Source: Paragordius varius (taxonomy: Eukaryota > Animalia > Nematomorpha). From it: a stretch of 64,000 nucleotides of DNA. Below the pieces are notes generated by a model, which saw only the letters and a list, made by a program, of their open reading frames with translations, was not told where the DNA came from and made no database searches. Shown piece after piece: positions 1-34,300 of this stretch (the first letter of the stretch is position 1; the number at the start of each line of letters is the position of its first letter). The stretch is taken from NCBI GenBank assembly GCA_964247055.1, contig OZ176055.1, positions 6,138,001 to 6,202,000 on the forward strand, given 5' to 3'. Made by a program: the position numbers and the translations under genes.

Positions 1-3000
1 GAGATTCTCCGTGGTTCGTTAAAATTGGCAAAGGATTAAAAATTGTATCAGTAGACCTGCGCATAACATATTATATTTTTCGTAAAATTTATACAATATT
101 ATATATTAATGGTTATTTAATTGATTATTGATTATGACGAATCCATAACTGCTTAAAAAACGAAGGATAATACTAGTTTATTTTATAATTTCCTAAAAAA
201 GACCAAATTCAATCAAAATATTCAAAACTTGTATCAATATACCTCTAAATTTTATTAAAACACAGAAAAGGCAAACTAGTTTAGAAATAGCATAATTTTT
301 AATGTTACTCCTATAAAATAATAACTAAAACATAAAGGGGTTATGATACGGATAGCATGTTTTCCCCAATAACGTATAAAAAATTTATTTAACTATTTTT
401 TAGGTTTGGTTTTTTTATTTATTAATTTACAAATGAGTTAAGATGAGTGAATTAAAATTTTTTAAAATAAGTTTCAATAAATTCTAGTTCAATACATTAA
501 GGCACACAACTTTAAAAAATTATATAAAGCCAGTTATGAAACTGCTTTATTTCGGTATGTATATATTGCCGTTTACCGTGTAAAAAAATTCTTAAAATTC
601 CCGAAACATTTATAAACTATCAAAAAATTATACAAATAACAACGTTTTAATTGAAAAATTATTTGCCTTTATATAAATAAAGAAAATTACAGATTAATGT
701 AAAATCCCTTTCTGCAGGCTGTAATGTGATACACCTTTTCCTCTATAGTTGTTACAGTAAGATAGGCTAAATCTCCTATAAACCATTCATAAACAATATA
801 AATATATATTAAATATAAAAGCAAAAAAAATAAAACAAATTTTATGATTTATGGGAAAAATAATTTTTATATATAAAAAAAATTAGCTAAATAATAAATA
901 TTTTGTTTAACCTCTGTACCTTTTAATTTGCGTTGTGAGGGAGGTGGGTTCCATTGATTAAAATGAACTGATCTTAAGCATGGGATATGCTGTAATTTGT
1001 ATTAAAAATTATATTAATTGTCGCAAAATATTAATAACGTGTTGAGGGTAAAGTCAAATTAAAGTTCGACGCAAATTTAAATTTTATTTTTAACATAAAT
1101 TAGGTTTTTTAATTAATTTAATAATATACAGTAGCTGTGGTAAAAAACACCAAGGTTGCATATTTCAACAAATTTTCCCTTATAAATTTAAATTTATTGG
1201 TTTTTTACTAATGGACAAACTATTTAACTAATATACGGTACTGTAATTATTTGTTTTAGCCGTGATTTTATCCGCTTAATAAATAATATAATTATTAACA
1301 TCATTGCAAAATATGCCACCATAATCTGTACAAATTATATAATTTGCAAATTTTACACAAATTCTCTTATATAACACATAAAACGATCTTTCATTCTTTG
1401 CCGTAAGAAATATATAAACCACCAAAACAACATGATAATGAATAAACCTTTTCTTTAAGATTAACCGGATGAAGTGGTAATAACCTAATCTCTTTACTGT
1501 TTTGTGGGTCGTTTTTACTAGTTTGATTGGAGGTTTTTTGAGTATTTGATAAATTATCTCCATGATGTGCAACTATTAGAATATCGGGCGAAGGTAAAAG
1601 ACTTTCCTCTGTAGTTTGGGTCGCGATAGGTGTATGCAAAAGTTTAATCATATTTTGTTTCTCCAAATGTTCTATCATTTATAAACATATATATGTAAAA
1701 AAATCTTTTTTGCTATGTATATAACAGGACTTGGAACCCGAGTCTAAATTTTGAACCGGTTCTAACACGATTTTTAAAAATTTTAACTGGTTACGGTTCT
1801 TGCACTTTACGTTTTTTTCGATTCTAAAGTTTTTATAAAATCGAATTTCCGGTTCTCATCGTGGAACAACGCCTGGTTTCAGGCCTTGGTTTATAACTAA
1901 AGAGTGCAGAATCCCTGATATCTAAATACAGCAAAAGGTTATTAATCAAACAGTCATTATCGTTGGTTTTATGGATTTAATTGGTTAATAATCATAATTA
2001 TACATTTAGAAGATTACCCATTAAAAAACCATTATAACCAATAATATGGATGTTTACTGCATTATAAAATAAATATATGTTATTGTATAGTACTGATCAA
2101 TAAAAATATATAAATTCACTATTGGTTCAAAAGTATATAATATCATTATTATTTTAAAAGTTTTAATCAAATTAAAAAATAAATTACATTAAATTAGATG
2201 GCCAATCAACCTCGCCTGTACTAAAAAGTTGTTTAATCATAAAAGTTCATTTTGCCTTATATTATTAATACTATGGAAAGCGAAAAATATGTGAGTGAAG
2301 AGCTACTATATATTAATAATAATACATTAAAACAGATCACATTAATATGTCCAAACATCACAGATTCAAAAAAATTGGCATTACATAATACAGTAAAGAC
2401 AACTATATTGTTGGCCATTTCGGTATTTTAATTGGCTAAAATGGAACACATGTCTGTTGTCATGTATGAGATTTTTGGTTTTTTTAGTTATCTGTTCCTT
2501 AAATTATGAGTACAGTGTTTAAAAAGATATGTTATTAACACTTCGATTCAAATTGGGTATCGCCCCAGACAGTTGATATTTCAAAAAATATATTGAAAGA
2601 AACGACTATCATATAAAATTGTATATATAAGCTGTAATGTCTAAATAAATTTAGTTTGGAAAAAGAAATTTCCTTTCAAATTGCTTGGACGCCATTTTTA
2701 TTTTCCAACATTTTCGCAAAAGGTGGTGTTTATTGTATTTTAAAGCTAAAATTAAAGCTATTTTTTTGTTTTTATCATATCTAACATTTATATAAAGAGA
2801 AAAAGTGGTTGTATAATTTTTAAATTTAGCTAATACACACATGTCATATTGACTAAATTTTTACCTTTGGGTTTTACCTAAAAATAATTAATATCAAGTA
2901 TTTTTAAATGATTTTTTTCTATTTCGGTTCATTAATGTTATATAAGTGCAAACCCTTATCATAGTTTCAATTCATTCCATATTTTTTGAAGTATATAATT

Positions 3001-6000
3001 TTAAACAAATCTGGGGTATCTAAGGACCCCACTTTGATACGACGTGTGTTGTATCCAAAAATTAATAGAATGTAAAATTTCAGACATACAGAATTAAATC
3101 CGTTTTTATCCATTCAAAATACAGAAATGGTCAATAGTAGCTCTCGTTATTGTATACAATACTTTTACTTTGTTATATTGGTACACATCACATCAGAGAA
3201 ATCCTAATAATCTTTTTACGTTTTGGTTATCGATAAAATGGTAATATACCATAGAAGTACTTTTGTTTTATAGTTTGGACTCAGAGAATAAATATAATTA
3301 CTCTTAATATTATAACTTATAATAATAATCGAATATAATGCTTATTACATATAAAGTCTAGTTGACTTGGGGATATTTTATAATCTCAAAGTTTTTAATT
3401 TTACAATATATAATACAATTTGTTTGCGATATAAAGTTAAATCACAAAAAAGAACATAAAATAAATTCAACTTATATATTATCATAAAACGACAAACATG
3501 AGACAAAAAACAATATCCTACCTATATTAAACGGTTGACATATTTATAATATAAACTACAAATTACTTTAATGAAAATTATTTTAAATTCATATTTTTAT
3601 TTTTGCAAAGGACAAATAAATATTGGAATCGCAAGGAAGGACAATTGGAAAATGATTTGAAAGATTAATCTATATATTTATAAAAATGGAAAATGCTGGC
3701 TTTGTGATCTGGTACAGGAAAACCGGTAGACCCAATCAAATCCAAATATCGAAAAAATATAATCATTAATAAATGTCCCGACAATAGCTTCGCCCTTTTT
3801 TTGAAATAGGCCCCCAGTTCGGGCCCACCCCGTATGAAAAACGGGTTTTTTTTGAAAACAGAAGTCCACAAAATCGTGTTTTTGAGACAATTTTCCGGAG
3901 AACGTGTTGGACCATTCAATTTCAAATATAATTTTTGTTTACTTATTTTCGATTGCGCTGAACATAGCCGAGCCACTTTTTTGATTTAGGCCCTCTTTTT
4001 ACCCGCTCCCCCCGTGAAATGCCACCTTTTTCAAAAAACAAAGTCCACAAAAATAATTTTTTAAATCGATTTTTCGCCCTAGGTATGAGACCGTAAAAAT
4101 TCAATAAAGATTCCACGTATTCCCTGTTAAAAGGCAAAAATTTTAGTCTACCGTTATTTGATGATAGCTGCTTGGTAAGGAGTTACCCGCTAAAAACTGA
4201 TTTTTCATATAACTTTGTGATCTGTTCCTGGAAAACCGGTGAAGCCATTCAAATCCAAACATCGAAAAAATTTAATCATTAATAAATGCCCCGACAATAG
4301 CTTCGCCCTTTTTTGGAATTAGGTCCCCAGTTTGGGCCCACCCCGTGTGAAAAATGGGTTAAGTCAATTTTTTGGAGAACGTGTTGGACCATTCAATTTC
4401 AAATATGATTTTTGTTTACTTATTTTCGATTGCGCCGAACATAGTCGAGTCACTTTTTTGATTTAGGCCCTATTTTTACACGCTACCCCCGTAAAATGCC
4501 ATTTTTTTCAAAAAAAACAAAGTCCACAAAAATAATTTTTTAAATCGATTTTTCGCCCTAGGTATGAGACTGTAAAAATTCGAGAAAGATTTTTCGTATT
4601 GCCTGTTAAAAGGCAAAAATTTTAGTCAAGCGTTTCTTTAATGATAGATGCTGAGTAAGGAGTATCTATCATATGTATAGCATGTTAAAAGATATATGGA
4701 TATTAATACATTATTTATCCTCATCTATATATTTATAAAAATGGAAAATGCTGGCTTTGTGATCTGGTACAGGAAAACCGGTAGACCCAATCAAATCCAA
4801 ATATCGAAAAAATATAATCATTAATAAATGTCCCGACAATAGCTTCGCCCTTTTTTTGAAATAGGCCCCCAGTTCGGGCCCACCCCGTATGAAAAACGGG
4901 TTTTTTTTGAAAACAGAAGTCCACAAAATCGTGTTTTTGAGACAATTTTCCGGAGAACGTGTTGGACCATTCAATTTCAAATATAATTTTTGTTTACTTA
5001 TTTTCGATTGCGCTGAACATAGCCGAGCCACTTTTTTGATTTAGGCCCTCTTTTTACCCGCTCCCCCCGTGAAATGCCACCTTTTTCAAAAAACAAAGTC
5101 CACAAAAATAATTTTTTAAATCGATTTTTCGCCCTAGGTATGAGACCGTAAAAATTCAATAAAGATTCCACGTATTCCCTGTTAAAAGGCAAAAATTTTA
5201 GTCTACCGTTTATTTGATGATAGCTGCTTGGTAAGGAGTTACCCGCTAAAAACTGATTTTTCATATAACTTTGTGATCTGTTCCTGGAAAACCGGTGAAG
5301 CCATTCAAATCCAAACATCGAAAAAATTTAATCATTAATAAATGCCCCGACAATAGCTTCGCCCTTTTTTGGAATTAGGTCCCCAGTTTGGGCCCACCCC
5401 GTGTGAAAAATGGGTTAAGTCAATTTTTTGGAGAACGTGTTGGACCATTCAATTTCAAATATGATTTTTGTTTACTTATTTTCGATTGCGCCGAACATAG
5501 TCGAGTCACTTTTTTGATTTAGGCCCTCTTTTTACCCGCTACCCCCGTAAAATGCCATTTTTTTCAAAAAAAAACAAAGTCCACAAAAATATTTTTTTGA
5601 TTGTATTTTTTTGTCCACGGTATGAGACTGTAAAAATTCGAGAAAGATTTTTCGTATTGCCTGTTAAAAGGCAAAAATTTTAGTCAAGCGTTTCTTTGAT
5701 GATAGATGCTGAGTAAGGAGTATCTATCATATGCATAGCATGTTAAAAGATATATGGATATTAATACATTACACTAGACAACAAATTTTAACTTTTTTTA
5801 ACAGCCATTCTTGTAAATTTAAAATTTATTTCATTAAAGTACATAATTAGTATATCTGAAAAGAAAATTGGTCTTACATGAAAGAATTTTTTTATATTAG
5901 AGTTTATCGATAATTTTTGACCCCGATTTAACATTAAACTCGAAATTTCATAAATTTAAAGTTTTAGATATGAAGCCATGTATTTTATATCATTCGAAAG

Positions 6001-9000
6001 AGCGCAAAAAACTGCATCTTTTAAATGGTAGTAAGTCAATTAAATCCATCGGATGTAAAAGTTATTTGGATTTAAATGGTCAAAATTTTCAACCCTTAAA
6101 TAAGTCAGGAATTTTCACAGACAAACTAATTTTTAAATCATTTATTTAATATTATTATTAGGGTTATATTAGTATTTAATTTAAAAAAAATGTTTGGAAA
6201 AGCTTTTGGTTTGCTTTTTAAATAAAAATTATAATTATCATAAATATTTTACCTAGTGGATACTAAAATGCATAGTTATAACTGTAAATTTATTACATAA
6301 TGGCTATAAAAGATCAAAAATACCTTAAACTTTGTTTATATTTTTAAATTTTCGAAATTATCAGCCTTGTATAGAAAATAAATTAATATTGATGAGATGG
6401 TAATTTTTAAAAAACAAAAAACTTAAAAATGGCTGTTTTGAGTGACATAAAAGCAATAAAAAATGTTTTAATCAAAAAAAACTTTCTTGTGTTATCTTTT
6501 TTGGACATTCATCTCCATCTAAACAAAGTTTGAGCTATTTTCATCTATTAGTTTTAAAAATATTATAATTAAAAAAAATGCTCCCGCTTCGCGCGTTTGT
6601 CGCTCTTTGTGTCCAATATTAACTGTCGATGTAATACATATTAGTATACATTTTATAGAGTTTTTAATACTCTTTCGAATGATATATTACAAATGGGCAT
6701 TACTTATATACTTTCAAAGAAAAACATTTTTTAGTAAAATTTTGATAAAGAGGGCGCATAATCTAAAAAATCAAATTATACAAAATTCTTCCAACGAGTT
6801 ATAATTTTTATTTCAGATTTACTGTTAAAATGATATTAAATATCAAAAAATGCAAAAAACTCGAGTGGAGAAAAAATTTGTTGTCTAGTGTTATTTATCC
6901 TCATCTATATATTTATAAAAATGGAAAATGCTGGCTTTGTGATCTGGTACAGGAAAACCGGTAGACCCAATCAAATCCAAATATCGAAAAAATATAATCA
7001 TTAATAAATGTCCCGACAATAGCTTCGCCCTTTTTTTGAAATAGGCCCCCAGTTCGGGCCCACCCCGTATGAAAAACGGGTTTTTTTTGAAAACAGAAGT
7101 CCACAAAATCGTGTTTTTGAGACAATTTTCCGGAGAACGTGTTGGACCATTCAATTTCAAATATAATTTTTGTTTACTTATTTTCGATTGCGCTGAACAT
7201 AGCCGAGCCACTTTTTTGATTTAGGCCCTCTTTTTACCCGCTCCCCCCGTGAAATGCCACCTTTTTCAAAAAACAAAGTCCACAAAAATAATTTTTTAAA
7301 TCGATTTTTCGCCCTAGGTATGAGACCGTAAAAATTCAATAAAGATTCCACGTATTCCCTGTTAAAAGGCAAAAATTTTAGTCTACCGTTTATTTGATGA
7401 TAGCTGCTTGGTAAGGAGTTACCCGCTAAAAACTGATTTTTCATATAACTTTGTGATCTGTTCCTGGAAAACCGGTGAAGCCATTCAAATCCAAACATCG
7501 AAAAAATTTAATCATTAATAAATGCCCCGACAATAGCTTCGCCCTTTTTTGGAATTAGGTCCCCAGTTTGGGCCCACCCCGTGTGAAAAATGGGTTAAGT
7601 CAATTTTTTGGAGAACGTGTTGGACCATTCAATTTCAAATATGATTTTTGTTTACTTATTTTCGATTGCGCCGAACATAGTCGAGTCACTTTTTTGATTT
7701 AGGCCCTCTTTTTACCCGCTACCCCCGTAAAATGCCATTTTTTTCAAAAAAAAACAAAGTCCACAAAAATATTTTTTTGATTGTATTTTTTTGTCCACGG
7801 TATGAGACTGTAAAAATTCGAGAAAGATTTTTCGTATTGCCTGTTAAAAGGCAAAAATTTTAGTCAAGCGTTTCTTTGATGATAGATGCTGAGTAAGGAG
7901 TATCTATCATATGCATAGCATGTTAAAAGATATATGGATATTAATACATTATTTATCCTCATCTATATATTTATAAAAATGGAAAATGCTGGCTTTGTGA
8001 TCTGGTACAGGAAAACCGGTAGACCCAATCAAATCCAAATATCGAAAAAATATAATCATTAATAAATGTCCCGACAATAGCTTCGCCCTTTTTTTGAAAT
8101 AGGCCCCCAGTTCGGGCCCACCCCGTATGAAAAACGGGTTTTTTTTGAAAACAGAAGTCCACAAAATCGTGTTTTTGAGACAATTTTCCGGAGAACGTGT
8201 TGGACCATTCAATTTCAAATATAATTTTTGTTTACTTATTTTCGATTGCGCTGAACATAGCCGAGCCACTTTTTTGATTTAGGCCCTCTTTTTACCCGCT
8301 CCCCCCGTGAAATGCCACCTTTTTCAAAAAACAAAGTCCACAAAAATAATTTTTTAAATCGATTTTTCGCCCTAGGTATGAGACCGTAAAAATTCAATAA
8401 AGATTCCACGTATTCCCTGTTAAAAGGCAAAAATTTTAGTCTACCGTTTATTTGATGATAGCTGCTTGGTAAGGAGTTACCCGCTAAAAACTGATTTTTC
8501 ATATAACTTTGTGATCTGTTCCTGGAAAACCGGTGAAGCCATTCAAATCCAAACATCGAAAAAATTTAATCATTAATAAATGCCCCGACAATAGCTTCGC
8601 CCTTTTTTGGAATTAGGTCCCCAGTTTGGGCCCACCCCGTGTGAAAAATGGGTTAAGTCAATTTTTTGGAGAACGTGTTGGACCATTCAATTTCAAATAT
8701 GATTTTTGTTTACTTATTTTCGATTGCGCCGAACATAGTCGAGTCACTTTTTTGATTTAGGCCCTATTTTTACCCGCTACCCCCGTAAAATGCCATTTTT
8801 TTCAAAAAAAACAAAGTCCACAAAAATAATTTTTTAAATCGATTTTTCGCCCTAGGTATGAGACTGTAAAAATTCGAGAAAGATTTTTCGTATTGCCTGT
8901 TAAAAGGCAAAAATTTTAGTCAAGCGTTTCTTTAATGATAGATGCTGAGTAAGGAGTATCTATCATATGTATAGCATGTTAAAAGATATATGGATATTAA

Positions 9001-12000
9001 TACATTATTTATCCTCATCTATATATTTATAAAAATGGAAAATGCTGGCTTTGTGATCTGGTACAGGAAAACCGGTAGACCCAATCAAATCCAAATATCG
9101 AAAAAATATAATCATTAATAAATGTCCCGACAATAGCTTCGCCCTTTTTTTGAAATAGGCCCCCAGTTCGGGCCCACCCCGTATGAAAAACGGGTTTTTT
9201 TTGAAAACAGAAGTCCACAAAATCGTGTTTTTGAGACAATTTTCCGGAGAACGTGTTGGACCATTCAATTTCAAATATAATTTTTGTTTACTTATTTTCG
9301 ATTGCGCTGAACATAGCCGAGCCACTTTTTTGATTTAGGCCCTCTTTTTACCCGCTCCCCCCGTGAAATGCCACCTTTTTCAAAAAACAAAGTCCACAAA
9401 AATAATTTTTTAAATCGATTTTTCGCCCTAGGTATGAGACCGTAAAAATTCAATAAAGATTCCACGTATTCCCTGTTAAAAGGCAAAAATTTTAGTCTAC
9501 CGTTTATTTGATGATAGCTGCTTGGTAAGGAGTTACCCGCTAAAAACTGATTTTTCATATAACTTTGTGATCTGTTCCTGGAAAACCGGTGAAGCCATTC
9601 AAATCCAAACATCGAAAAAATTTAATCATTAATAAATGCCCCGACAATAGCTTCGCCCTTTTTTGGAATTAGGTCCCCAGTTTGGGCCCACCCCGTGTGA
9701 AAAATGGGTTAAGTCAATTTTTTGGAGAACGTGTTGGACCATTCAATTTCAAATATGATTTTTGTTTACTTATTTTCGATTGCGCCGAACATAGTCGAGT
9801 CACTTTTTTGATTTAGGCCCTATTTTTACCCGCTACCCCCGTAAAATGCCATTTTTTTCAAAAAAAACAAAGTCCACAAAAATAATTTTTTAAATCGATT
9901 TTTCGCCCTAGGTATGAGACTGTAAAAATTCGAGAAAGATTTTTCGTATTGCCTGTTAAAAGGCAAAAATTTTAGTCAAGCGTTTCTTTAATGATAGATG
10001 CTGAGTAAGGAGTATCTATCATATGTATAGCATGTTAAAAGATATATGGATATTAATACATTATTTATCCTCATCTATATATTTATAAAAATGGAAAATG
10101 CTGGCTTTGTGATCTGGTACAGGAAAACCGGTAGACCCAATCAAATCCAAATATCGAAAAAATATAATCATTAATAAATGTCCCGACAATAGCTTCGCCC
10201 TTTTTTTGAAATAGGCCCCCAGTTCGGGCCCACCCCGTATGAAAAACGGGTTTTTTTTGAAAACAGAAGTCCACAAAATCGTGTTTTTGAGACAATTTTC
10301 CGGAGAACGTGTTGGACCATTCAATTTCAAATATAATTTTTGTTTACTTATTTTCGATTGCGCTGAACATAGCCGAGCCACTTTTTTGATTTAGGCCCTC
10401 TTTTTACCCGCTCCCCCCGTGAAATGCCACCTTTTTCAAAAAACAAAGTCCACAAAAATAATTTTTTAAATCGATTTTTCGCCCTAGGTATGAGACCGTA
10501 AAAATTCAATAAAGATTCCACGTATTCCCTGTTAAAAGGCAAAAATTTTAGTCTACCGTTTATTTGATGATAGCTGCTTGGTAAGGAGTTACCCGCTAAA
10601 AACTGATTTTTCATATAACTTTGTGATCTGTTCCTGGAAAACCGGTGAAGCCATTCAAATCCAAACATCGAAAAAATTTAATCATTAATAAATGCCCCGA
10701 CAATAGCTTCGCCCTTTTTTGGAATTAGGTCCCCAGTTTGGGCCCACCCCGTGTGAAAAATGGGTTAAGTCAATTTTTTGGAGAACGTGTTGGACCATTC
10801 AATTTCAAATATGATTTTTGTTTACTTATTTTCGATTGCGCCGAACATAGTCGAGTCACTTTTTTGATTTAGGCCCTATTTTTACCCGCTACCCCCGTAA
10901 AATGCCATTTTTTTCAAAAAAAACAAAGTCCACAAAAATAATTTTTTAAATCGATTTTTCGCCCTAGGTATGAGACTGTAAAAATTCGAGAAAGATTTTT
11001 CGTATTGCCTGTTAAAAGGCAAAAATTTTAGTCAAGCGTTTCTTTAATGATAGATGCTGAGTAAGGAGTATCTATCATATGTATAGCATGTTAAAAGATA
11101 TATGGATATTAATACATTATTTATCCTCATCTATATATTTATAAAAATGGAAAATGCTGGCTTTGTGATCTGGTACAGGAAAACCGGTAGACCCAATCAA
11201 ATCCAAATATCGAAAAAATATAATCATTAATAAATGTCCCGACAATAGCTTCGCCCTTTTTTTGAAATAGGCCCCCAGTTCGGGCCCACCCCGTATGAAA
11301 AACGGGTTTTTTTTGAAAACAGAAGTCCACAAAATCGTGTTTTTGAGACAATTTTCCGGAGAACGTGTTGGACCATTCAATTTCAAATATAATTTTTGTT
11401 TACTTATTTTCGATTGCGCTGAACATAGCCGAGCCACTTTTTTGATTTAGGCCCTCTTTTTACCCGCTCCCCCCGTGAAATGCCACCTTTTTCAAAAAAC
11501 AAAGTCCACAAAAATAATTTTTTAAATCGATTTTTCGCCCTAGGTATGAGACCGTAAAAATTCAATATGGATTCCACGTATTCCCTGTTAAAAAGCAAAA
11601 ATTTTAGTCCACCGTTTATTTGATGATAGCTGCTGGGTAAGGAGCTACCCGCTAAAAACTGATTTTTCATATAACTTTGTGATCTGTTTCCGGAAAACCG
11701 GTGAAGCCATTCAAATCCAAATATCGAAAAAATATAATCATTAATGAATGCCCCGACAATAGCTTCGCCCTTTTTTGGAATTAGGTCCCCAGTTTGGGCC
11801 CACCCCGTGTGAAAAATGGGTTAAGTCAATTTTTTGGAGAACGTGTTGGACCATTCAATTTCAAATATGATTTTTGTTTACTTATTTTCGATTGCGCCGA
11901 ACATAGTCGAGTCACTTTTTTGATTTAGGCCCTATTTTTACCCGCTACCCCCGTAAAATGCCATTTTTTTCAAAAAAAACAAAGTCCACAAAAATAATTT

Positions 12001-15000
12001 TTTAAATCGATTTTTCGCCCTAGGTATGAGACTGTAAAAATTCGAGAAAGATTTTTCGTATTGCCTGTTAAAAGGCAAAAATTTTAGTCAAGCGTTTCTT
12101 TAATGATAGATGCTGAGTAAGGAGTATCTATCATATGTATAGCATGTTAAAAGATATATGGATATTAATACATTATTTATCCTCATCTATATATTTATAA
12201 AAATGGAAAATGCTGGCTTTGTGATCTGGTACAGGAAAACCGGTAGACCCAATCAAATCCAAATATCGAAAAAATATAATCATTAATAAATGTCCCGACA
12301 ATAGCTTCGCCCTTTTTTTGAAATAGGCCCCCAGTTCGGGCCCACCCCGTATGAAAAACGGGTTTTTTTTGAAAACAGAAGTCCACAAAATCGTGTTTTT
12401 GAGACAATTTTCCGGAGAACGTGTTGGACCATTCAATTTCAAATATAATTTTTGTTTACTTATTTTCGATTGCGCTGAACATAGCCGAGCCACTTTTTTG
12501 ATTTAGGCCCTCTTTTTACCCGCTCCCCCCGTGAAATGCCACCTTTTTCAAAAAACAAAGTCCACAAAAATAATTTTTTAAATCGATTTTTCGCCCTAGG
12601 TATGAGACCGTAAAAATTCAATAAAGATTCCACGTATTCCCTGTTAAAAGGCAAAAATTTTAGTCTACCGTTTATTTGATGATAGCTGCTTGGTAAGGAG
12701 TTACCCGCTAAAAACTGATTTTTCATATAACTTTGTGATCTGTTCCTGGAAAACCGGTGAAGCCATTCAAATCCAAACATCGAAAAAATTTAATCATTAA
12801 TAAATGCCCCGACAATAGCTTCGCCCTTTTTTGGAATTAGGTCCCCAGTTTGGGCCCACCCCGTGTGAAAAATGGGTTAAGTCAATTTTTTGGAGAACGT
12901 GTTGGACCATTCAATTTCAAATATGATTTTTGTTTACTTATTTTCGATTGCGCCGAACATAGTCGAGTCACTTTTTTGATTTAGGCCCTATTTTTACCCG
13001 CTACCCCCGTAAAATGCCATTTTTTTCAAAAAAAACAAAGTCCACAAAAATAATTTTTTAAATCGATTTTTCGCCCTAGGTATGAGACTGTAAAAATTCG
13101 AGAAAGATTTTTCGTATTGCCTGTTAAAAGGCAAAAATTTTAGTCAAGCGTTTCTTTAATGATAGATGCTGAGTAAGGAGTATCTATCATATGTATAGCA
13201 TGTTAAAAGATATATGGATATTAATACATTATTTATCCTCATCTATATATTTATAAAAATGGAAAATGCTGGCTTTGTGATCTGGTACAGGAAAACCGGT
13301 AGACCCAATCAAATCCAAATATCGAAAAAATATAATCATTAATAAATGTCCCGACAATAGCTTCGCCCTTTTTTTGAAATAGGCCCCCAGTTCGGGCCCA
13401 CCCCGTATGAAAAACGGGTTTTTTTTGAAAACAGAAGTCCACAAAATCGTGTTTTTGAGACAATTTTCCGGAGAACGTGTTGGACCATTCAATTTCAAAT
13501 ATAATTTTTGTTTACTTATTTTCGATTGCGCTGAACATAGCCGAGCCACTTTTTTGATTTAGGCCCTCTTTTTACCCGCTCCCCCCGTGAAATGCCACCT
13601 TTTTCAAAAAACAAAGTCCACAAAAATAATTTTTTAAATCGATTTTTCGCCCTAGGTATGAGACCGTAAAAATTCAATATGGATTCCACGTATTCCCTGT
13701 TAAAAAGCAAAAATTTTAGTCCACCGTTTATTTGATGATAGCTGCTGGGTAAGGAGCTACCCGCTAAAAACTGATTTTTCATATAACTTTGTGATCTGTT
13801 TCCGGAAAACCGGTGAAGCCATTCAAATCCAAATATCGAAAAAATATAATCATTAATGAATGCCCCGACAATAGCTTCGCCCTTTTTTGGAATTAGGTCC
13901 CCAGTTTGGGCCCACCCCGTGTGAAAAATGGGTTAAGTCAATTTTTTGGAGAACGTGTTGGACCATTCAATTTCAAATATGATTTTTGTTTACTTATTTT
14001 CGATTGCGCCGAACATAGTCGAGTCACTTTTTTGATTTAGGCCCTCTTTTTACCCGCTACCCCCGTAAAATGCCATTTTTTTCAAAAAAAACAAAGTCCA
14101 CAAAAATAATTTTTTAAATCGATTTTTCGCCCTAGGTATGAGACTGTAAAAATTCGAGAAAGATTTTTCGTATTGCCTGTTAAAAGGCAAAAATTTTAGT
14201 CAAGCGTTTCTTTAATGATAGATGCTGAGTAAGGAGTATCTATCATATGCATAGCATGTTAAAAGATATATGGATATTAATACATTTTTTATCCTCATCT
14301 ATATATTTATAAAAATGGAAAATGCTGGCTTTGTGATCTGGTACAGGAAAAAGGTTATACCCATTCAAATCCAAACTTCGAACCCCCCCCCCCCCCCCCA
14401 GAAGTCCGAAGGACTTCCTCGGGCTGCGTAGCAGCACGAGATTCACGCTAGTATATTATATATGTGAACTCAACTCTTCTAATTCTTCGTTATCTTATCT
14501 AATTCTAGCTGTTTGTTGTTAAAATAAAAAAATATTTTTGAGAATTATGTTGGCATAAACTACGTAAAAAGATTTAAATATATAAGTTAAAATGAAAAAA
14601 ATGGTAATGTGGAAAGTGATACATATTTATTAAAATATTATCATTAATTAAAATGATGAAAACATCCTCAACAATAATTTACGGAATATGCGAAATTTCA
14701 TCGATTAGTACATAATTTTTTTCTTATATTTCGCTTCAATTCATTGGAAAAAATAATTTTTAGATTTTTTGCAAAAAATATTCATATTTTATTGGTTATC
14801 TGTATGTATATTCATCCATTTTTTAAAAGATATATGAATGATAAATGATATTTGATTTATAGGCCGCATTTTCTCTAATAAAATAATACAATTTTTTAGG
14901 AAAAAAATATTTTATACAAACCACCACACCACGCATTCTTTTTCAAAAATATATATTTAAAAATAAATTTTTGATAAAAATTCAGATATAAATAAATTTT

Positions 15001-16745
15001 ATTAGCGAATAAGTTTGTTATACCGATTATATTATCAGGTCCAAGTATAGCGTTAACATAGGTGAGAGATGCCCCATCCGTACCATTGAAAGCATTCGTA
15101 AGATCCAAAGTATTTAAAATATCTCTCAAATGCCTAACATGCAATCTTATTTCACGCAAAGTGTATGGCTCTATACAATAATGTAAAACATAAAAACTTG
15201 ATTATAATTTTATCGATTGGGATAGATATACATTTGAGTGGTTATATTATGTATTATAATGATGCCATTCTTAACAAAGAATTTTATATTCAAAAGTGAA
15301 CAATATACGAGATATATTACGGAGGGAATTGCTACTACATTTTTTACAATATATACTTAGTAAAAAAATGGGACTCTAAAACATATGGTGATGTCGGGAA
15401 ATAAATCATTTTTAGTAATAAAATGGCTAATTTTAATTTATTTTATTTTATTCAGCGTGATTATACTTTTGCTGTTAACATGTAAATTAAAAAATTCAAT
15501 AATGGAAAAAATTAAAAAACAAAAACCTGACAATGCCTATTTTTAATAGGAATTTTGCGGCTTCTCTAGAAGAATCTAAAATTTATATCAAACTATTTAA
15601 TTATCAAGTACTTATTGATTGATTTTTGTTAAAATTTTACCATAACTTGCCAAGTCTGTAAAAAATTATGGTTATAATAAAAATAAGAAAGGCTGTAGTG
15701 GTGGTTTCTTTCTATTACCCATTATTTTTACCGATGTACCGTTTTATCATTATTACTCAATTTTTACCCTTAACTAAAACAAAAGTTAAATTTCACCAAA
15801 AAACCCGCATTTCCATGTTAAAATGTTTGAAATTTGTAACTGATCGTATTTTATATTTTAAACCTACCTTGTTTGATCATTAATGTATCATTTTCACATA
15901 ACGTAGGTATACTCTTAAGTTCAGAAAATTGATCTAAAACCGTGCCCTTGTGGACGAGAGAAAAGCATGTTTCCATATACGTTTCCATTCTTTCCATCAA
16001 TATTTGATGTAATTCTTGCACCATTTCCGACGATGTTACCTGAAATTTTTATAAATTGTGATTAAAAATTTATAAAAATAAAACTTCCAAAAACAATTTA
16101 AAAACCAGATCAATTTTTATACACTTAAACGGAGTGAAAATTAAAAATAATCTCAATTGGGGTTTATGATTATAAGGGTTGCATAAATAATTTTAACATT
16201 TCCTCACATGTTAATAATATATCATCATAATTTTGAAGAAACGAAATTAAATTTGATGATAAAAACAAAAGAGCTATTGAAATCTAAAGCAGTGACTCCC
16301 AAAAGGGGGCGTGAAAATTTAATTAAATTAATGATATTGTGAGGATCTCAGGTGCAAATTTTCATGATTAGTCTCCGATATGGATAAAAATTTTAATTGG
16401 CAGATAATTTTTATAAAATTATAATAAATTTTGCATTTTTATCTTTGTTTTTTTGGGAGGAAAAGAGCCAGAATTCGTTTTCGTTTTGGTGGGGCGTGAA
16501 CAAAAAAAGGTTGGAAAGCACTGGTCTACAGGGTGTAAATTTAAGAAACAGACGAAATATTTGGTAAAACCAACCTTAAAAAATAGGGTAGAGAGGAATG
16601 CAATATTATATAATAAAATTATAACTATTAAGGTTAGAATTTTCGTTATACTATAATAAATGTATACTTGGATTTCTATAAGGGAATCCGGATTTTCCGA
16701 ATACTGAATGTTAAGGTTAAAAATTGAATGCTCTTGAATTCCCAT
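1..16745 (-). CDS. CLUH: Clustered mitochondria protein (CLUH/clueless), 5' portion; gene continues beyond the left edge. Exons 16668-16745, 15868-16039, 15024-15170, 1448-1671, 920-989, 691-775, <1-56. An additional upstream exon is possible.
   Basis: Spliced translation gives IEIQ|[45 protein letters not shown]...[19 protein letters not shown], then [36 protein letters not shown]|[29 protein letters not shown]|STDTIFNP. These match recalled CLUH motifs (SPQEMVQEIHQVL, EPYTVREARIHVRHVRD, WNPPPGNRKMHGDL, ITASTRGFYLNQST). All junctions are GT-AG with consistent phases. Confidence 0.93.
1725..1888. mobile_element. hAT-type MITE; related copy at 55353-55550
   Basis: Imperfect TIRs CAGGACTTGGAACC / GGTTTCAGGCCTTG, with a 7/8 matching 8-bp TSD (GTATATAA / GTTTATAA). 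Confidence 0.6.
2539..3061. mobile_element. TTAA-flanked piggyBac-like MITE, copy 1
   Basis: Starts TTAA|CACTTCGATTCAAATTGGG and is collinear with the copies at 17624-18199 and 38183-38759. The right end is degenerate. Confidence 0.7.
3669..14350 (+). repeat. Tandem array of nine ~1056-bp units (starts 3669, 4724, 6904, 7962, 9018, 10074, 11130, 12186, 13242) plus a partial tenth at 14298; each unit contains two ~0.5-kb related subrepeats
   Basis: Near-identical sequence recurs at a 1055-1058 bp period, mirrored by the repeated ORFs in the track. Subrepeats begin CTTTGTGATCTGGTACAGGAAAACCGG and CTTTGTGATCTGTTCCTGGAAAACCGG. Confidence 0.98.
5772..6890. mobile_element. Non-autonomous CACTA (CMC/EnSpm-type) DNA transposon nested in the array
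   Basis: 17-bp perfect TIR CACTAGACAACAAATTT / AAATTTGTTGTCTAGTG. The 3-bp TSD TTA (5769-5771, 6891-6893) is confirmed against uninterrupted units, which read ATACATTATTTATCC. Confidence 0.92.
16290..16523. mobile_element. hAT-type MITE in a CLUH intron
   Basis: Ends CAGTGACTCCCAA / TTGGAAAGCACTG, with a 6/8 TSD (ATCTAAAG / GTCTACAG). Confidence 0.55.
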
Positions 16746-18798: not shown

Positions 18799-21169
18799 CA
18801 GTGGTACTCACCAAAAAAATTTGACGGGCCAAATAAAATATATTTTTTTTTCGAGGGCCATGTCCCTTATAATGGATATTGCAAAGCTATTTAACACATA
18901 TGCACATATTTATACTCTAAATCAGCACAATGAATTTTTTGCGGATCGCATGTAAATCCAGCTAAAAACTGGTTTACCATTTAGTTTAAAAAATTAAAAT
19001 ATTTTGATAAAAAATTTTATTTCGATATTAACCAATATTTTTTGACAAATTTGGTTTCACCTCATGACAGGCCAATCTTAATACGTCGTTAATATGAACA
19101 TCGGTTAGGCAGTTTCTGTATGTATTCTTGAGATATTTTATTTTTGAATATGACGTCTCGCTCGTATAAGTTGAGGGAAAAAGAGTTAGGATAACTTCAG
19201 CCCATTTTTTTATATTTTCATATTTATTTGGCACATCTTGCCAAAACTCTACATATCTTTCTTCTCTACGATTCTCTTTTTTATATCCAAATTGGAATTT
19301 TTAAAACCTACGAAGTCTTCAATGATATGCGCCTGATCAAAACCGAAATGCTCAAGTTGCTTAATGCTGGATATATCCATATGCCATGGATATTCAACGA
19401 GTTTTAGGCAAAATTTAATATATCTTAATTTTTGAAATCTTACTCATTAGATAAAAATGTTGATGATCTATTATTAAATTAATCTCCGCGGTGAATTCCA
19501 TATTTTCTTTATGAATCGTTTTAAGTGTTGAATACAGAAGTTTTTAATAAAATCTAGTTTATATTATTAATTTTTAAAAGATATTTTATTAGCAAATTGG
19601 GTTAAGCTGCAACTCTTATTGCTACAAATATTGATTCCTTGACGACGTATTGAAAAAGTTTATAAGTAATGTCGCAAAGGTACACTAATAAAACCCACCA
19701 TTTGTCGCTATAAATTTCCTCGTCAAACTTTCTGTTATCTTTTCTAAATATTAAAATTTCATGTCTTAAAACAAAAAATCTATTCAATACTTTGCTAAGG
19801 ATTAGCCATTTCACAGCGGTGTACAAAAGAATATAATCAAACTCACTGTGAATATCTTTCAGAAGGTTTTTGAATTTACGGCGGTTGAATTCTCTGCCAC
19901 GGATGTGGTATTATTACAACCGTTTAAATTACTCAACGAGTGATTCATCTTTTACACGCGAAACCAAGTTTGATGAATAAAGCAGTGAAAGGATAAAATA
20001 TTTTGTAAATTATATTTGTTTTTCAAAAGAGGAATAAATCCTTTGGTTATTCCAATCATAGAGGGACAGCCATCTGTGCAGATCGAAACCGATTTTTCAT
20101 AGATATACCATTATTATCGAAAAAAGTTTTAATTATTTCGAGAAAATCACTTCCTTTCGTGTATTATTCATTAGTAAAAATTTTAAATATTTATCGTTGA
20201 TTATGTTGCCGTTGCAAAATCTTACAAAGAGCGCACATTGAGGTGTTGTATTAATATCAGTGCTAGAATCAATAGTATTACTAAAATATTTGCAGTTTTT
20301 CTGAGCCAATAATGTATCGTTAAAAAGATATTAATACATATCTTCAATGCGTCCAGCACATGTTCAGAAAGTTGAAGTTTTTTAATTTGCCTCATGATTT
20401 GTTCTTTATATGGAATTTATGAAATAAAAAAGTGCAACCATTTATTAGACATTCTTTTAGTTGGAAATCAGTAAATGGTTTTATATTTTTTCCTAAAATA
20501 TAATTTCATACGAAGCTAATTATACAACTTTTTCCTGGAAGAAAGCTATGGACATAATACATTTTCCTTTCTGGTATAATTCCTTAATATTTTTATGTTT
20601 TTCGTTTTTCCTCATTTTCTGGTAATTTATGAGAAAAATGGATTGTAAAATTCTTTCAATATTGTATTTTTTTTTATAATTATGTTGTCCTTACATATAA
20701 GGCTGGTAACAACATTTTTATTTTAAACGACAAAGGGATAATTTACGTTTTTTAGCATTAGATGTCATCCTTTGAATGCTATAAAAAAACAGGTCGAAAT
20801 TTAATGATGTGGATTTGAAAAATATTTTATGGGAATGAGTTATATAAAATGAGGCAGGATAGCTATGAAAAGATATGTATGCAAGTTTGGGTGAAAGGCT
20901 TGCTTAAATACAAAAAAGGAATGCAATAAAAATTTCAAAATAGAAAAGAAAATAGAATACAGAAACAACGCGTGCCAAAATTTTGAAATTATTTTAATGT
21001 AGGGAAATTTTCTACAAATCGAATTGGGTAAAAAATAACCACCAAAATTAATTCTAAAGAATATAAATTAATATTAAAATAATCGAAAATTCATTTATGT
21101 GTTAAAGGGCAATTTTAAAGCACTCTTAGGGCCGCATGCGGCCCGCGGGCCGCGGTTTGAGTATCACTG
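18799..21169 (-). mobile_element. Decayed hAT DNA transposon, Buster/Charlie (ZBED5/FAM200-like) type
   Basis: TIR CAGTGGTACTCA / TGAGTATCACTG with a perfect 8-bp TSD GTATAAAG (nnnTAnnn pattern). Transposase remnants are YTAVKWLILSKVLNRFFVLRHEI (cf. HTEVRWLSRGKVL) and LFPSTYTSETSYSKIKYLKNTYRN (cf. PFPSTYLCE, hATC dimerisation region). Confidence 0.93.
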
Positions 21170-31311: not shown

Positions 31312-34300
31312 TTATTTTTGATGCGGTACAATTTGGCCATTATTTCGTTTACCTTTTATACTATGAATATTGATAGATTTAGGGTCATGATTCAAAACTT
31401 CGAGATTATCATTAACCAATTTTATTTTTTTCGCAGTGGGTGTTAACAATTTCCTTTTATATCGTTTTGGGTGTGATGTTTCCCTATCATTTGTTAGAGA
31501 ATTCGACATAGATTGAGGTGTATGTTGTAACGCTTCATTCTTATCATTTAAAGTTGTCTTTTTTGCGTCTCCGGATGTATTATTCATACCACAAGGGGGT
31601 AGGGTTAATTTCCAAGGCAAACCACTAATTATTGCATCGAATAGGGAATCATCTCTGTAATGGGTACAAATGTATTGTTTAGTATCCGTATAGTTTGGGA
31701 CAGATGTGGCATTCAACAAACTAGCCTGCTTTAACCAAACAGATTGTCGACTAGAAACGTATGAGGATCCAAGTTTTTCACGCCGTATGAGCATGTAAGT
31801 CAGATTTCGAACCTATATATATTATAGAAACAATATTATAACTGTTAATCAAAATACAAAAAGGTATTTTAACAATATATATATATATATATATATATAT
31901 GTTTACCCTTTCAAGATCTTGTCTTAGTTGTACACACATCTTAAGCCTGTGATAAAGTTGACAAGATGATTCTAAAGCATTTCCCATTCCGGTTGATGTG
32001 ATAGGTGTTCGCCCAGGTCCCAAGTGTGTCATATTTGTTAGGGGTATGCCATTATTATTATTAAAAGTATTTGATGTAATAACATAGTCATTTTTGCGAT
32101 GATGATTCATGATGCTAAAAGAGGGTGGATAAAGCAGTGTTGCAAACGGAGTTATCTCAGAAACGTTATCCGGAACAAAAAGCGTAGACGACGTTATGGG
32201 ATCCAAACAACTAATGGTATACAGGGAATGTGCTAGGCTTGCTTGTGAATAACTATTTTGCAAATCAAATTCAACGTTTTGTGGTGGTATCAGCAAGTGA
32301 GTCATCATATTTTCTTCTTGTTCAAAGGTTGGATTATTTGATAAGAATGTTAAGAAATATGCCTTTTCCAAATCCGTACAATTTAAAGTAGAGACGGGAT
32401 GTAATACATTTCGATATTGCTGCTGTTGATGACTGTTAGCGTGTATGAAACAGCCGCCCTTCTCCCGCATAACATTTGCCATAAAAGCCGTGGGTGGACT
32501 CTTGGTAAGTGGAACGAGGAACGGAATTAAGGGTCCATTAAACCGATCTTTGCGTTTAAGAATCCAATATGCAAATGTCAGATTTACGAGTTGCTTTTCA
32601 TTATGGAAGGAAACCTTATCGTTGTCAGTATGCGTAAGTAAGGGTTTGAGATCCACATATTGATAAAAATGTTTTTCCATATCCCTCAATTTTAACAGTC
32701 TAGACTGTTCATATAACATATCATCTGACGACGCCTTTGTTGTAGAGATTGATGTTGGAGAATGATGTTTATAATTGGTATAATGACCAGATTTTTTTAC
32801 GCTCTCATTGTTGGCTGAATTGATATAAATGGGGGAAAGTATATGCTTATCACACATATTTTTGTTCCCTATACCAATATTGTTGTTGTTAATAGTTGGT
32901 TGACATAATGGGGAATTATTATTGATACGATTATAAATACTTTTTTGTGGAGATAGGGATTGTGGGGAGGATCTTTTGTAAACATTGTTATCTAATTTCT
33001 GCAAAATTGATGGCGGTTGTTGATTAGGTGATACCAGTTCACCGTTTTTGATAATTCGCTTAACTCGACTATGCTTTGGGCAAAAAGCCTAATATAATGG
33101 ATTAAAATACTGTAAAAACCATATATTGGTTAAACTCAATAATATATAAAAATGTATTTGAGCATTTGATTCCTTTTAATAGGACTTATGTAAATTCAGC
33201 AAATAAATATAATTGATTAATATTACTAATCTTTATCAAACGCAAAAAATAAAACAAGACAAATATACTGAGCCCACATAAATTTAATATATTATCCTAT
33301 TATGAATTAAAACCCCTACAATTAGTACTTTAATATTGGACAAACCGATTTTATAAAAATATATAATTTGACACATTCGAGTAAACGACAATATATATAC
33401 TTTCAGCTTTACACCAGATGGTACTATATTGGCGTTGTTAGATGGAGATGATATACTTTGCATATTATCATTATTAATATTATTTTGATTTTTAAGGGCA
33501 GCATTATTGTTTTCTAAGACGGTCCAATCAGCTCTCATGTCCAAGTTTCCACGGAACCCGCATGTGACATGAAAAGCTATTCTACAACCCCGTGCACTAC
33601 ATTGAATACAGGCGCCATTACGACGACCTCGACAAACGGCACATCGTAAATTCCATCGGACAGAAGGTATCCTACTAACACCTAGAGTGTAATATAAAAT
33701 CATATATAGTAATAACAGTTGTAAAATCCGTAATAAATAATTATCTTTCAGTTGATTTTCGATTATCATTATATTACGGATTTTACAACTGTTATTACAA
33801 AACGTAATCAATCCTTCATTTACCATTATAAATAGGTTGGGTTTTAGATGGGAAGGGGGGTGAGGAGTAATTAAAAATTGTGGGTAAAAGTTGACACATG
33901 ATATTCCGTAAATTTAAAAATAGAACATTTAAGTAGGAACCAAAATTGATATAAAAATATAAAAAATATTAAACATGATAAAATATAAAAAAACCCTTCA
34001 CTTATTACACAAGGTAGATTTCCCCTTTTATACATCCTTTTTTGCCAAAAACCCGTAAAATTCATAAAAAAAATTTCATACCCGTTAACGGTTCCATTCT
34101 ATCAGGATCTCCAATCCCAATTTCCGGGATCCAAAGTGCACAACTAACATGACACCAACGAGGACGAGTAGGGGAGCTTTCGAATTGACTAGCAGCTGAG
34201 GCAGAATGTGAACGATTCGTCGTTACTGTAGAAGAATTTAATTGGGCTGGTTTTAGGGCACCCCCTGGATTTGGGCAAAGACAACATTTTGGAGTTACAA

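Follow-up and report, generated by a model that had tools for sequence, protein, structure and literature searches.

The window analyzed here is a 64-kb stretch of the Paragordius varius genome (C6:6138001-6202000 in a 110.5-Mb assembly of 44 contigs), and positions given without a contig prefix refer to it. Positions 3669-14451, equivalent to C6:6141669-6152451, are occupied by one Helitron with ten 5′ ends and one 3′ end, which lies antisense inside a single-copy CLUH-like gene (a conserved mitochondrial-distribution gene). The coordinates of the features are listed in Table 1.

Layout of the Helitron in the window

The 20-mer TCTATATATTTATAAAAATG was found in 10 exact copies on the + strand, all between 3669 and 14298 (starts at 3669, 4724, 6904, 7962, 9018, 10074, 11130, 12186, 13242, and 14298); about 0.36 matches were expected by chance, and 11 were reached in no shuffle. 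The first copy is preceded by ...GATTAA, so that the junction reads A|TC and the element starts with TCTATAT... at 3669. Successive 5′ motifs are spaced by 1055-1058 bp, with the sole exception of a 2180-bp interval in unit 2, which harbors a terminal inverted repeat (TIR) element, and the nine units are 97.5-100% identical to each other. Tandem Repeats Finder, whose longest period was 500, did not detect the array. A weak match to the 5′ motif at 32652 (3 mismatches) was within chance expectation and was not counted as a 5′ end.

The twin-hairpin 3′ signal occurs once in the window, at 14401-14435. The 3′ end was read as ...CACGCTAG at 14451, the terminal run being GATTCACGCTAG, followed by T. 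This end folds with -15.3 kcal/mol (z = -5.6; 0/200 shuffles as stable) and leaves an unpaired tail of 11 nt after the hairpins, ending in CTAG before the T. The TC and CTRR termini, the GC-rich hairpin about 10-12 nt before the 3′ end (hairpins 14401-14440), and the insertion between A (3668) and T (14452) without target-site duplication (TSD) are those of a canonical Helitron of the Helitron1 type, here non-autonomous, and the same ends were found at 40 loci. The initial annotation had described a Helitron with TC...CTAG termini, 3′ hairpins and an A|T target, and with ten 5′ ends and one 3′ end; both descriptions were borne out by the ten exact 5′ motifs, the single twin-hairpin signal, and the lack of a terminator in the units.

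Each unit consists, in order, of a leader, sub-repeat a, linker 1 (29 nt), sub-repeat b, and linker 2 (60 nt), the last of which ends in A directly before the next leader. The first 85 nt of the terminal module are 92% identical to the unit start. The polyC run of this module (14383-14399) varies in length at the same site of other loci, with module lengths of 143-160 bp, and corresponds to a G-run beside the hairpins on the opposite strand.

The TIR element in unit 2 has CACTAGACAACAAATTT inverted ends and is PIF/Harbinger-like and non-coding. Its dispersed family is young and looks active, because at least 40 full-length genome copies are 93-99% identical and 1027 first-look candidates were obtained. 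Unit 2 without the TIR element is identical to unit 3, and the insertion therefore postdates the duplication of these two units.

Table 1. Coordinates, strands, and descriptions of the features of the Helitron copy, its variant relatives, and the host gene.
Feature	Position	Strand	Description
Whole non-autonomous Helitron copy	3669..14451	+	9 units and terminal module, ~10.8 kb
Leader with true Helitron 5′ terminus (TC...)	3669..3699	+	31 nt; restarts each unit and terminal module
Unit 1	3669..4723	+	type A; one 1-nt deletion, one substitution
Unit 2	4724..6903	+	type C; split by TIR element
TIR element	5772..6890	.	1119 bp, CACTAGACAAC... inverted ends, TSD TTA, in unit 2
Unit 3	6904..7961	+	type C
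Units 4, 5, 6	7962..11129	+	type A; mutually identical
Sub-repeat a	7993..8477	+	unit positions 32-516; 29-nt linker 1 next
Sub-repeat b	8507..8957	+	unit positions 546-996; 83.8% identical to a
Unit 7	11130..12185	+	type B; family-ancestral states at unit positions 506-617
Unit 8	12186..13241	+	type A; identical to units 4-6
Unit 9	13242..14297	+	type B; 3 differences from unit 7
Terminal module	14298..14451	+	154 bp: leader and 54 nt sub-repeat, 17 C, twin hairpins, CTAG
Twin 3′ hairpins	14401..14440	+	7-bp stem 14401-14417; 9-bp interrupted stem 14418-14440
Variant member	C4:9400273-9405380	+	unique 170-nt region before 3′ hairpins replacing 154-bp module
Variant member	C6:2888838-2893953	-	unique 170-nt region before 3′ hairpins replacing 154-bp module
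Host exon, CLU_N	15854..16048	-	CLU_N model positions 2-48; 27.6 bits, above cut-off
Open stretch with next host exon, CLU_N	14899..15201	-	CLU_N positions 59-78; E 0.0028; collinear with 15854-16048 exon
Host exon downstream of array in gene direction, weak GSKIP-like	690..848	-	Pfam E 0.094; Atlas 0.86

The dispersed family and its relatives

Genome searches with the unit and with the terminal module gave more than 2000 first-look candidates in either case. With no more than 1 mismatch allowed, the 5′ 25-mer had 2015 genome matches and the 3′ 25-mer 541, with zero matches for the controls, and the termini are thus common to a dispersed family, which the initial annotation had named as a point to check. 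For many 5′ motifs, a matching 3′ end is missing in the vicinity, and the leader is therefore probably shared by related subfamilies. For the family sample, 70 loci were merged into 46 regions, and the landmarks were mapped. A is the last base of all of about 28 independent 5′ flanks, and T the first base of 40 of 40 3′ flanks, in loci composed of 34% A and 34% T.

A leader copy was found at most 175 nt upstream of the 3′ end for 37 of 40 sampled 3′ ends, and a solitary terminal module occurred in none of the 30 loci examined (30/30). At every locus, the 85 nt of the terminal module are about 92% identical to the unit starts. Because this internal 5′ copy is consistently about 8% diverged and accompanies nearly all sampled 3′ ends, it predates the spread of the family. 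The second 5′ end thus characterizes the family and did not arise at the window locus, and members have two or more 5′ ends already prior to expansion. On these grounds, the special Rep cut between two 5′ ends that the initial annotation had placed here was not sustained.

Family members share one grammar, in which leader, sub-repeat, an optional linker 1 with a further sub-repeat, and linker 2 are repeated n times and followed by a terminal part (leader, 54 nt of sub-repeat, polyC, hairpins, and CTAG). Across the loci read, n was 1, 2, 3, 5, 6, or 9, and at least 15 leader copies were present at C1:7348137-7363459. The repeat periods comprise about 480 bp, 576 bp (half-units), 1056 bp, and two-unit blocks. 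Arrays of the ~480-bp period consist of sub-repeat and linker 1 and have no 5′ end in the unit. Since these arrays also expand, amplification needs no Rep cutting at 5′ ends, and a general recombination or slippage process is sufficient. The family is young, dispersed, and non-autonomous, with a body that is a hierarchical tandem repeat. With respect to the long, homogeneous, concertedly evolving arrays expected of a satellite, only nine units are present in the window, units cluster by locus, and higher-order patterns were seen. At C4:8197536-8203691 (-), five units alternate between 1040 bp and 1058 bp, forming a two-unit higher-order repeat.

The A before TC is kept at each of the internal junctions (n = 77), which end in ...TATCCTCA|TC (n = 44) or ...TATGGTAA|TC (n = 30). 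They read CCTCA|TC or GGTAA|TC and none reads CTAG|TC, which sets them apart from simple joined-end circle junctions. A possible origin of the first internal 5′ end is that a mini-Helitron became nested in a sibling by insertion at an A|T site. The parent for such an insertion, in which linker 2 runs on into non-leader sequence, was not seen among 78 cases; the leader follows in 77/78, and the exception is the TIR insertion. At two of the three variant loci, the array closes with a complete 549-bp mini-Helitron whose 3′ region of 170 nt is unique (variant members in Table 1). The common module of 154 bp resembles this 549-bp form with an internal deletion, and the longer form may be the ancestor of the terminal module.

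Helitron_like_N had 16 matches in the genome, most of them carrying stop codons. At one of these loci, L069 (C2:10244966-10248298), the sequence ...CTTAA|TCCATATATTTATAAAAATG gives an A|TC start, and about 500 nt compared at the 5′ end are 84.6% identical to unit positions 1-497. Broken frames of Rep and the helicase leader lie 1.4 kb downstream of this leader region, on the same strand. Copies of the coding part of L069 are 75-86% alike, in comparison with 93-100% for the non-autonomous copies. For the autonomous RepHel element with the same ends that the initial annotation had suggested looking for, a decayed candidate with a homologous 5′ end was thus recovered, and no intact or young one. 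L069 and nine other Rep loci (L061-L070) are decayed autonomous Helitron remnants, 75-86% alike; RepHel remnants also lie at C8:2823927 and C1:10595303. A further segment of L069, between the leader and the Rep frames (L069:640-877, 238 nt), is matched at 86-91% by dozens of loci, many of which hold weaker copies spaced by about 320 bp, and looks like another tandem-repeat family carried by Helitrons.

Unit variation and growth of the array

The nine units fall into three types in the order A C C A A A B A B, which is non-periodic, and the differences between types lie in two clusters. Types A and C, which make up 7/9 units, have a derived haplotype of three sites in patch 1 (unit positions 506-617). 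It was found in 0/41 units from other loci, and at 100% identity only in the window array among the 40 scored of 2210 candidates. In patch 2 (positions 868-893), the units of other loci have a major haplotype (29/41) or a minor one (8/41); the minor one is present in types A and B, and the major one in type C. As the private patch 1 haplotype is found on both patch 2 backgrounds, exchange between units of the array's lineage is needed, and the non-periodic order makes one rolling-circle run from a single template insufficient. In a tree of 50 units, those of the same locus group together. The presence of the TIR element in unit 2 and its absence from the twin unit 3 indicate that events were spread over time.

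The array was probably formed by insertion of a family copy into the CLUH-like intron followed by the stepwise gain of nine units through recombination. In such a course, Rep/helicase supplied in trans would have inserted the element at an A|T site, antisense in the intron, as judged from the termini and the target. The nine 1056-bp units would then have accumulated stepwise in the array's lineage, as the variant pattern suggests, by unequal homologous recombination, replication slippage, or gene conversion between direct repeats. Each internal A|TC might further serve as an alternative transposition start and give daughters with fewer units. Unequal recombination between 5′ direct repeats, which the initial annotation had offered as its alternative, fits better than its model of a special Rep event, given that 5′-end-free periods also grow and that the units are recombinant mosaics in non-periodic order. 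Several points weigh against stepwise growth at this locus. Rolling-circle copying would leave runs of identical units, such as units 4-6 or the five at C1:8320624, just as readily. With 40 of 2210 candidates scored, a donor array with the private haplotype could have been missed, and growth in a lost donor would look the same in a single assembly. An intact or young RepHel partner was not found in the assembly.

Amplification by a rolling circle is regarded as a somewhat unlikely alternative. A terminator-less one-unit circle, arising from Rep cuts at two successive 5′ ends or from recombination that drops the terminator from a circular intermediate, would be copied repeatedly, and the concatemer would close at the remaining 3′ end. 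This is the model published for plant arrays that have a single 3′ end but many 5′ ends, as far as it is summarized in a review (PMC12628747, citing Xiong 2016), and it accounts for units that span exactly A|TC to A|TC with A retained at all 77 internal junctions. The unit phase is set by the left edge of the element under any model, however, and is not diagnostic. Runs of identical units are present, but copies of one circular template should be identical at birth, or periodic for a template of several units, and the order of unit types in the window does not show this; with the private haplotype on two backgrounds, recombination is required anyway. Terminator-less units followed by a complete 549-bp mini-Helitron, as at 2/3 variant loci, resemble the published layout, although the last module usually measures 154 bp, less than a unit, so that the units are not truncated prefixes of it. 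The expansion of ~480-bp arrays without a 5′ end and the lack of CTAG|TC at internal junctions also argue against a rolling circle. Later recombination could have overwritten an initial rolling-circle burst, and this mechanism was lowered in rank. It is rather improbable that Rep actively cleaves at the internal A|TC junctions and, by paired cuts, releases one-unit circles that are re-amplified and re-inserted. If it did, about 540 elements with about 2000 start signals would provide a natural series on the choice of Helitron initiation and termination in an animal.

It is quite doubtful that the nine-unit array was built in a donor copy and moved whole to the window locus with little or no later change. 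Multi-unit members with different flanks at many loci, several of which share a CCTCA internal and a GGTAA last junction, suggest that arrays do transpose as arrays. The derived haplotype of seven of the nine units, confined at full identity to the window among the candidates scored, is difficult to reconcile with such a transfer, as is the TIR insertion that followed the unit 2/3 duplication, though the latter does not indicate where the duplication took place. An assembly artefact, in which a shorter array was inflated or mis-joined, is highly improbable. Four units identical over 1056 bp are of the repeat type prone to miscounting, and the count of these four units could be off; nevertheless, the order is fixed by the three types of unit, the single TIR insertion, and the unique flanks, and the same layout recurs at many loci in the 44-contig assembly.

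The layout of multiple 5′ ends and a single 3′ end is not new, having been published for plants (Xiong 2016) and Fusarium (Chellapan 2016), so that the units without their own terminator, correctly pointed out in the initial annotation, follow an arrangement already in the literature (PMC5148889 and, in summary form, PMC12628747). According to the summary in the review PMC12628747, through which Xiong, Dooner and Du 2016 (Plant J 88:1038) is cited here, arrays that combine several 5′ ends with only one 3′ Helitron end were reported in large numbers from plants and explained by a circular template that loses its terminator before rolling-circle copying. As far as these arrays are characterized there, they agree with the P. 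varius array in units that start with the 5′ end and lack a terminator, in one closing 3′ end, and in repeat numbers from a few upward. Judged by the same summary, they differ in location (centromere, compared with a euchromatic intron of an animal), in the last module, which in P. varius is usually a 154-bp stub and not a full element, and in the variant pattern, which here points to recombination and not to a single rolling-circle burst.

In FoHeli of Fusarium oxysporum, internal duplications cover the first 31-85 nt of the 5′ terminus, and copies with several 5′ termini lie at different genomic sites, indicating spread by transposition (Chellapan et al. 2016, PMC5148889). The duplicated 5′ stretch is a likeness, that of P. 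varius also being 85 nt, whereas FoHeli is Helitron2-like, with asymmetric terminal inverted repeats and short, few duplications (PMC5148889), and P. varius has a canonical TC...CTAG family with up to 15 or more kilobase-sized units. Non-autonomous Helitrons or Helentrons with central tandem repeats that seed satellites include the oyster Cg170 carriers (PMC7492417, PMC8268682) and Drosophila DINE-TR1, and Helitron-borne tandem repeats are also found in Xenopus Heli2Xen (PMC12001565) and in Hydractinia subtelomeric repeats (PMC11934779). In so far as these accounts describe them, all four share conserved ends, a variable internal array, and element-borne dispersal of the repeat with the P. varius family; the repeat they describe is internal and excludes the element's own 5′ terminus, unlike the P. 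varius unit, which includes it. The window provides a clean, well-anchored animal example of a Helitron tandem repeat that includes its own start signal. The family-wide data indicate that the double start is inherited and that the unit number then drifts by recombination, which bears on the seeding of satellite DNA by transposons and tempers the usual appeal to rolling-circle copying.

Host gene and neighboring features

The initial annotation was also correct in placing the array inside a gene. The array is antisense between the CLU_N and GSKIP-like exons of the CLUH-like gene, in a gap of about 14 kb, and through the 10.8-kb insertion a conserved gene present in single copy has acquired a very large intron. 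Exons with the CLU domain follow the GSKIP-like exon at C6:6135429-6137109, just before the window start, and no other CLU-domain matches occur in the genome. CLUH/clueless proteins carry CLU_N, GSKIP-like, and CLU in this order, and the motifs WNPPP and GDLAYL..HITA in the host frames are taken by us to be of the CLUH type.

The two CLU_N exon pieces are separated by about 650 nt (15202-15853), so that the gene has at least two long introns. For the open stretch at 14896-15159, the Atlas search gave chance-level bacterial matches only, and Pfam placed it as the end of CLU_N. A short open frame at 19028-19234 (-) matched the hAT C-terminal dimerisation domain with E 5e-4, just under the cut-off, and is probably a remnant of a hAT transposase.

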